Positions 18,694 to 21,080 of a DNA stretch of 64,000 nucleotides are shown in pieces. The DNA is from Hyaloraphidium curvatum SAG 235-1. Taxonomy: Eukaryota; Fungi; Monoblepharomycota. The notes beneath the pieces are model-generated. The model saw only the letters and a program-made list of their open reading frames with translations. It did no database searches and was not told where the DNA came from. The stretch spans positions 310,001 to 374,000 of the forward strand of contig JAIVFI010000016.1 in the NCBI GenBank assembly GCA_025558095.1, in the 5' to 3' direction. Position 1 is the first letter of the stretch; the number at the start of each line of letters is the position of its first letter. Both the position numbers and the translations under genes were made by a program.

Positions 18694-21080
18694 ATGTCTA
18701 ACGATTCGGACGTTCCGGACGGGCGCGTCGGCCTTACCGACAGGATACGGTCGACGTCGGTCAACGTGGGTCGGCCTGGAGCCCGCCTCGAAGGAATGGA
18801 CGCCGACGGCCCCTTCGGGGTCCTGGAACCCTTAGAGCTTCCAAGACCTGAGCAACAGCGTGGCTGCCCAGGCGATGAGGAAGGAGCTCGACAAGCTCAT
18901 CTCCAAAGTTCAGGATGCTGAGAAGAGGAAGGTTGGTTTGAATCGGCTCTGCGCTGCGTTCCGCCGACTGACGGCCACCCAGCAATTCGCGAAGGAGATG
19001 GACAACTGCTACCACCTCTTCACGAGATACCTGTCCGAGAAAACCAAAGGGAAGAAGCTGTGGGTCGTTGTCGCGGTGGACGCCTTTCTGTCTCCAACAC
19101 ACTCTCCCCACCCGGGTCATTGCAGCGAATGGGACAAGATTGCCTCTCCCCACCCGGATCAGGTGTGCATGACGAAGCTCGGATCGCTTGAATCTGCCTG
19201 ATGATATTTGCGTAGATTGTGCCTTACGCTCAGCTGGAGCCGTGCCCGCCGGAGAAGCAGAAGCCTCTACTCGAAAAGCTCGTCGTGCTGAAGCTGAACG
19301 GTGGTCTGGGGACAACCATGGGCTGCGTCGGGCCCAAGAGGTGGGCCCTTGACCCCGTGGTGCCGGATGACTGTTACGAGACCGCGCGCCCATAAGTGCC
19401 ATCGAGGTCCGCGACGGCTTGACCTTCCTGGATCTGACCGTTAGGCAGATTGAGGTGTGATGCTCACGTCTGGGGATGGTGGGGCGATCCTCACACATGC
19501 CGGCAGTACTTGAACAGCAGCAACGACTGCGACGTGCCGTTCTTGCTGATGAACTCGTTCAACACGGACGACGAGACCAAGCGGATCATCCAAAAGTACT
19601 CGGGCCACAACATCGATATCCGCACGTTCAACCAGAGTCAGCACCCGAGGATCATGAAGGAATCTTTGCTGCCCGCACCGAGGTCCCCGGACGATGACAT
19701 TGGCAAATGGTACGCGAGGATGTCATCTCGCATTTGAGACGTCTGATCGAGAGGTCGCAGGTACCCACCTGGCCACGGGGACCTCTACGACGCCATGGTG
19801 GGCTTGTCACCGTGGGAGTCGGGGTGGAGCTAACGCTTTTGCAGTATAATGTCGGTCTCATCGACGAGCTGCTGGCTGCTGGCAAGGAATGGCTCTTTGT
19901 CTCGAACGTGGACAACCTCGGTGCAACCGTGGATCTGAGTGGGGCCAGTCGCCCCCTCGTTGACATGCCTGCGTCTCACCGCAACGTCAGATCTCTACAA
20001 CTACATCGTCGAGCACGGGAACGAGTTTGTGATGGAGGTAAGCTCACTTGACAGGCCTCCACAGTCCATCGGGCTGACGCCGGCGTGTTTTAGGTCACGG
20101 ACAAGACCAAGGCAGACATCAAGGGCGGCACCCTCATCGATTACGAGGGCAACATCAGGCTCCTTGAAATTGCGCAGGTCCCTCCGGACCACGTAGACGA
20201 CTTCAAGTCCATCAAGAAATTCAAGGTCGGTAATTGCACGTGGTTGTTGCAGAGCTTGTCTGAGTTCGTCGCAGATCTTCAACACGAACAACCTGTGGAT
20301 GAATCTCGCGGCGATCAAACGGGTGGTGGAGAACAACGAGCTTGATCTCGAAATCATTGTCAACCAGAAGACGATGGAGACCGGGGAGAAGGTGCTCCAG
20401 CTTGAGACAGGTTGGACCGTGCGAGTTACGCCCCGGGAACAGTCTTGACATCCAACTGCAGCCGTCGGGGCGGCGATCAAGCATTTCAAGAACGCGATTG
20501 GCATCAACGTGCCACGGAGTCGCTTCTTGCCCGTCAAGAGCACGTCGGATCTCTTCCTCATCACCTCTGATCTCTACTCGCTGGGCCGCGGGGAGCTCCA
20601 GATGAGCCCGAAGCGGCTCTTCGGCACTATTCCCATCGTCAAGCTTGGGGATCACTTCAAAGTAGGCGGACCCCCGTGCTCTGCCTTCGTTCGCGTCTGA
20701 CCTCTTTCGCCCGCAGAGTGAGGAAACTCGACGGAGCCCTAGGCTATCCTTAACATCGTCATGCAGAGGTCAACAACTTCCTTGCCCGCTTCAACGGTCC
20801 CCCGAAGATTCTCGAGCTGGATCACCTGTCGGTCACGGTGAGCCACGCTGCTTCGTCTGCGGGACATCAGCTGACCTAACTGCAGGGCGACGTGTTCTTC
20901 GGCGCGGACGTGACCCTGCGGGGCACCGTCATCATCGTCGCTAATCAAGGAGCCCGGATCGACATCGCTCCAGGATCGATCTTGGAAGACAAAGTGGTCA
21001 CCGGAAACCTCCGACTCATCGGTGCGTGGATTTGTGACGTTTAACCGCCATTGCTGACGTCTGCCCCTTTAGACCATTGA
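18694..21080 (+). CDS. UGP1: UTP-glucose-1-phosphate uridylyltransferase; 16 introns in my model, including a 1-nt exon at 20717 and an 8-nt last coding exon
   Basis: Manual splicing gives [79 protein letters not shown] and the ending GNLRLIDH*. Confidence 0.96.
20717..20717 (+). other. Single-nucleotide exon (A) of UGP1
   Basis: The sequence reads ...ctgac ctctttcgcccgcag|A|gtgagg... between introns 20662-20716 and 20718-20766. It restores the conserved HFKKV. Confidence 0.75.

Follow-up and report, generated by a model that had tools for sequence, protein, structure and literature searches.

Does the UGP1 gene of Hyaloraphidium curvatum SAG 235-1 contain an exon of a single nucleotide, as the initial annotation of the window (the whole 64,000-nt stretch of contig JAIVFI010000016.1 analysed here) had claimed, and, if so, how might such an exon be spliced and how did it arise? 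The gene, which encodes UTP-glucose-1-phosphate uridylyltransferase (UGPase), occupies positions 18694..21080 on the plus strand of the window and belongs to an intron-rich, early-diverging, chytrid-grade fungus with axonemal dynein. It was delineated from transcript joints, a spliced model, Pfam and solved UGPases in the PDB. The spliced model, which was built from the transcript joints and used for the frame check and for intron mapping, comprises 17 exons and 16 introns of 47-70 nt and encodes 509 aa, with no internal stop when the single A is included. Database searches were carried out with single exons or fetched proteins as queries. Exon 13 matched the UDPGP family (PF01704, E 8.7e-26) and solved UGPases in the PDB; the gene displays both the UDPGP domain and the KLG-x-x-F-K-K-V segment by which eukaryotic UGPases are recognized. 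The UGPase exons are about equally similar to chytrid and Mucoromycota proteins.

All features of the unit lie on the plus strand. Exon 13 (20462..20661), supported by transcript and model, ends with the H-F-K codons (K438) and is followed by intron 13 (20662..20716; 55 nt, phase 0, GT-AG, GTAGGC..CAG), with a predicted branch A at 20700 within CTGAC (20697-20701). Exon 14 is the single A at 20717 (20717..20717), with which the AAG codon of K439 begins, as placed by the transcript, path enumeration and homologues. Intron 14 (20718..20766; 49 nt, phase 1, GT-AG, GTGAGG..CAG), with a predicted branch A at 20753 within TTAAC (20750-20754), leads to exon 15 (20767..20837), which starts with AG GTC and is placed by the transcript and by acceptor scoring. 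As in the one-base exon of Arabidopsis APC11, one base lies between a canonical AG and a canonical GT, each intron having its own predicted branch point. The coordinates first proposed for the 55-nt intron, A20717 and the 49-nt intron were borne out exactly, as was a branch-point motif in each half. Among the in-frame paths with one or two introns and GT or GC donors, HFKKV is obtained from one only, namely, the 55-nt intron, the A and the 49-nt intron. A 107-nt intron ending at a GAG acceptor had been put forward as the only alternative, which proved too narrow: besides that intron (HFKV), a 101-nt GC-AG intron (HFKVEV) and several weak-donor paths are in frame on paper, and neither the 101-nt intron nor the weak-donor paths were seen in the transcript contig. 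The first AG of exon 15 is the would-be GAG acceptor (20766-20768) and, once intron 14 is gone, becomes the distal AAG of a tandem acceptor.

Transcript evidence was drawn from the contigs of one public run from one study, probably RNA by its label and probably produced within the genome project; such contigs drop rare or minor isoforms. In the main contig (1855 nt, depth 3122), 20661 and 20767 are separated by exactly one A, and the pieces listed for it show neither other letters nor gaps. At each UGP1 joint listed, a GT-AG intron is missing from this contig, indicating that the run represents spliced RNA. The coordinates of the record concur: after the piece that ends at 20661, 71 letters (70 of exon 15 plus one) precede the piece that begins at 20885. 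Furthermore, the bin depths over the two introns (1939.5 and 1655.7) equal 82/132 and 70/132 of 3122.2, the exonic share of the 1855-nt contig alone, which argues that no other contig lies on either intron. Among the contigs of this one run, in which rare or minor forms may be hidden, we found neither an intron-retaining or alternative contig over intron 13 or 14 nor a skipped form. In these contigs, A20717 is part of the mature mRNA and contiguous with neither flanking exon, again as in APC11. Transcripts exclusively carrying TTCAAAGTC, the outcome named beforehand as speaking against the exon, were not encountered, the dominant contig including the A.

Elsewhere in the genome, there is a second, divergent UGPase gene (G000:C20:388339-388533, minus strand; 52% on the tested exon). 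Its intron pattern near the motif differs from that of UGP1, its codons are different, and it is apparently expressed in the same run, where a loose end at 20149 matches it. As the source of the main contig, a paralogue or retrocopy was ruled out: the UGP1 locus is single-copy in the genome, and the divergent gene has other codons and its intron elsewhere.

The mRNA carries five A at the junction, and because the additional A falls within this run, its origin is not directly readable. It could be a non-templated base, added by slippage of the polymerase or reverse transcriptase on the A run or by editing, next to a single 105-nt intron. The A4 run is a possible slippage substrate; however, at a depth of 3122, most of the mRNA would have to be of the non-templated form, and a templated A with canonical flanks is at hand. 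Given also that insertion editing of this kind is not known from fungal nuclear transcripts, we consider such an origin extremely improbable. Alternatively, one complex intervening sequence of 105-107 nt might be removed as a stwintron or by recursive (zero-base) splicing, as would befit two intron units arranged back to back in a kingdom in which stwintrons are known (PMC5587772). Loss of the whole block, however, leaves at most four A from the flanks, whereas the transcript has five. A stwintron is removed as a whole and a recursive ratchet point consists of AG followed directly by GT with nothing kept, whereas here the arrangement is AG-A-GT and the A is retained in the transcript; the likelihood of this explanation is close to nil.

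The protein sequence places its own demands on the junction. We considered 113 full-length homologues, 109 of which fitted the scoring pattern, and all 109 display the same spacing after KLG, with Lys at both positions (F-K-K-V/T), in agreement with the view that H-F-K-K-V represents conserved UGPase spacing. The 107-nt alternative would, by the same comparison, break this conserved spacing. If the A were skipped and the acceptor at 20766 used, the frame would shift, with a stop after residue 470; A20717 is, as in APC11, needed for the conserved reading frame. Such a plain skip would deprive the enzyme of its C-terminal beta-helix and of the interlock Asp, which human and yeast UGPases need (PMC5381698). 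By our own count from the yeast alignment, the interlock Asp maps to ELDH, about 18 residues downstream of K439, and the notion that K439 is adjacent to it was dropped.

Splice signals were scored with a model that was self-trained on 264 kb of contig; short introns supplied its length term, and the tested introns may themselves have entered the later rounds of training. With this model, introns 13 and 14 score 27.3 and 18.0 bits, respectively, compared to 7.8-28.4 bits for the 14 other RNA-supported UGP1 introns, 11.7 bits for the 105-nt skip intron and 0.0 bits for the 107-nt GAG intron. The A20717 site is the best-scoring 1-nt pair in the 264 kb, and the chance of finding such a signal within a 105-nt intron is about 2e-6 under a Markov null and about 1e-4 by our own arithmetic from the empirical rate. 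It is chiefly this low chance that speaks against an assembly error in the homopolymer. Under an assembly or strain indel, exon 13 of the true genome would end with an additional A, a single 105-nt intron (20662-20766) would follow, and AG-A-GT would be coincidental. The additional base does sit in a homopolymer, and long introns are possible, as illustrated by the 128-nt first intron of the cyclophilin gene next door. Yet besides the error, an internal branch point, an acceptor, an A and a donor would all have to be present by chance (2e-6 to 1e-4), in such places that the intron is split into two modal lengths. Furthermore, neither a substitution nor an indel is listed for the contigs over the rest of the 3.9 kb, and the neighbouring cyclophilin case behaves alike, so that an indel appears very unlikely. 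RNA structure at the unit is nothing special (z 0.67). With the transcript contig, the homologue spacing and the splice signals all supporting the proposed 1-nt A exon in UGP1, we are highly confident that A20717 truly constitutes a single-nucleotide exon, one that is normally included.

Introns 13 and 14 would both belong to the ordinary short U2 type, with a donor, a branch point and an acceptor apiece. Probably, they are recognized by intron definition and removed sequentially, since two spliceosomes could not plausibly be accommodated on splice sites one base apart. Removal of the upstream intron first appears slightly favoured, because intron 13 is the stronger of the two and its removal raises the score of the intron 14 donor from 3.9 to 6.7 bits by improving the exonic side. 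If intron 14 were removed first, a CAG-AAG tandem acceptor would be exposed (7.1 bits for the CAG versus 4.0 bits for the distal AAG), and use of the distal AAG could leak an mRNA lacking one Lys codon. The initial annotation had envisaged a one-residue skipping isoform produced through the GAG acceptor; this route is unlikely, with the acceptor scoring -4.6 bits and GAG being used by none of the 350 top predicted introns, and the isoform is absent from the contigs of the one run. AAG acceptors, in contrast to GAG, are in use in this genome (43 of the 350 top predicted introns and one RNA-supported UGP1 intron), and the tandem acceptor would therefore, according to the splice model, be the likelier route to a one-Lys deletion. 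Given this second route, a Lys-deleted junction would not alone prove a 107-nt lariat.

By either route, the exon could in principle be meaningfully alternative, with the HFKV form of the UGPase being made at an appreciable level. Use of AAG acceptors and the 4.0 bits of the distal AAG are compatible with this, and the contigs would have dropped a minor form. However, no contig carries the HFKV form, the GAG acceptor scores as poorly as noted, and the shorter spacing is found in none of the scored homologues, suggesting that the product is poorly tolerated; we regard appreciable production of this form as unlikely. Nor does the exon resemble the regulated, frame-preserving microexons of the animal neural type, being 1 nt in length, shifting the frame when skipped and having no skipped contig. 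Most likely, the A20717 exon has no function of its own and merely reflects where introns came to be placed in this lineage, within a gene that is very rich in them.

The history of the two introns was approached by mapping intron positions in UGP1 orthologues from 11 fungi and one plant. Counted from the first Lys, introns 13 and 14 lie at +3 and +4 nt, and neither position carries an intron in any of the 12. In the comparison with orthologues that had been proposed as a check, the spacing and both Lys residues are kept in 109 of 109 homologues, and the flanking introns recur in 0 of 12 orthologues. The intron between KK and V (+6, that is, 2-3 nt downstream), common to Spizellomyces, Glomus and Brassica, is absent from this UGP1, as are other widely shared 3' introns (-366, -237 and +111/112). 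At least seven of its 5' introns occupy positions shared with other fungi, and eight other introns, 13 and 14 included, are found in 0 of the 12 orthologues. The simplest reading is loss of old 3' introns combined with lineage-specific gains, two of which landed one base apart. Random placement predicts 0.42 one-base exons in UGP1 and the cyclophilin gene together, with P(>=2) = 0.07. Intron duplication was rejected as the origin, as introns 13 and 14 resemble each other no more closely than other pairs do (rank 58 of 120). That they lie so near the lost +6 intron is a hint of sliding. In its fullest form, this scenario would have introns 13 and 14 descend from the ancient KK-V intron, split and shifted by exonisation of one internal base and the old acceptor AG, so that the one-base exon would be an intermediate of intron sliding and the order of splicing would decide between the full-length and the one-Lys-deleted enzyme; we consider it rather doubtful. 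A pattern scan of metagenomes for an orthologue with an intron after the first Lys returned seven matches, none of which was a UGPase by flanking translation. The UGP1 introns of Rozella are only 26-30 nt long. Two Logan contigs of 80 and 83 kb encode proteins (P0283 and P0284) that share 77-78% identity with the dynein exon lying 4 kb away from UGP1, and their source genomes are likely the closest available for synteny checks of the window.

A second one-base exon is found in the adjacent cyclophilin gene (21182-22444, minus strand; 13 exons, 166 codons, from a spliced contig), which is convergent with UGP1, the two stop codons being about 100 nt apart. The exon, an A at 22096 (22096..22096, minus strand), is supported by the contig, which has five letters between 21968 and 22156, and by the 166-codon frame; the same spliced contig defines a 4-nt exon at 22019-22022 (minus strand). 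The APC11 gene of this fungus (L010, minus strand; G000:C39, near 263738) has a 19-nt first coding exon (ATG plus 16 nt) and a 77-nt intron, followed by a predicted 1-nt exon G and a 61-nt intron, giving MKVRVKSWNAV. The forward primer for Arabidopsis APC11 likewise extends 19 nt from the ATG and, we assume, ends at the exon boundary; judging from sequence, the APC11 one-base exon may occupy the same position in plants and this fungus and hence be very ancient.

Genome-wide, the 1-nt motif is not in excess, although this count has low power (45 donor-like versus 69 decoy at spacing 1; 46 versus 67 at spacing 4), and the histogram of short spacings in 264 kb, a weak test, is flat. Neither of these weak measures lends support to a dedicated genome-wide system of 1-nt exons. 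The motif alone is unreliable, because an AG-C-GT candidate at 38741 proved to be a false one, merely the start of an ordinary exon. The gene around it (37800-39020 in the window, plus strand) is presumably a deoxyhypusine hydroxylase-like HEAT gene. On the other side, divergent from UGP1, lies an AAA ATPase gene (14287-18088, minus strand; AAA domain by Pfam), which we take to be PEX1-like. An axonemal dynein heavy chain is located 4 kb from UGP1; over its region (about 24000-36000 in the window), GC falls from about 60% to 50-51%, and a stop-free stretch of 890 codons (25225-27897, minus strand) stands out in an otherwise intron-dense genome.

One-base exons are known from several lineages, and in limited literature searches we found no report of one in a UGPase gene or in an early-diverging fungus. 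In plants, the single-nucleotide exon A333 of Arabidopsis APC11 has mutational proof (Guo and Liu, 2015; PMC4674806), and sequential, intron-defined splicing has been proposed for it (PMC4674806); another 1-nt exon resides in VPS55 (Yu et al., 2022; PMC8831610). Like these, the UGP1 exon is one base between a canonical AG and GT, is essential for the frame and is included in the main mRNA. The plant exons, however, are conserved across land plants, whereas that of UGP1 is absent from 12 of 12 orthologues; the APC11 exon lies in an interval of 422 nt, with 333 nt separating it from the upstream exon, compared to the 105 nt of the UGP1 unit; and in place of mutational proof, the UGP1 exon is supported by transcripts, homologues and splice signals. 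Among fungi, there are 13 1-nt exons in 13 genes of Coprinopsis cinerea (PMC12230235), exons down to 1 bp in Cryptococcus neoformans (PMC3990503) and a 1-nt exon in CYP621A of Fusarium (PMC12940212). In these cases and in UGP1 alike, introns are short, an apparent intron of double length conceals one base, and the support consists of homologue spacing and transcript reads (contigs for UGP1). They all come from Dikarya, whereas the UGP1 case is from a chytrid-grade fungus.

With UGP1, a one-base exon supported by transcripts is now added for an early-diverging fungus, in an essential housekeeping enzyme and beside a second such exon in the adjacent gene. This suggests that there is practically no lower limit to the exon size which the spliceosome of this fungus accepts, and that genes with one-base exons will be broken when such genomes are annotated. 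The 105-nt unit also represents a very small natural substrate for studying the order of intron removal around a one-base exon, the two orders predicting different by-products. With the [D1,2]/[A2,3] stwintron (Fekete et al., 2017; PMC5587772) and with ratchet points, it shares adjacent intron units that are removed consecutively (in UGP1, presumably so), but those units overlap by one G or abut, leaving no base behind, whereas UGP1 keeps one. The UGP1 exon works like the known one-base exons, sharing every defining feature tested, and reveals no new mechanism.
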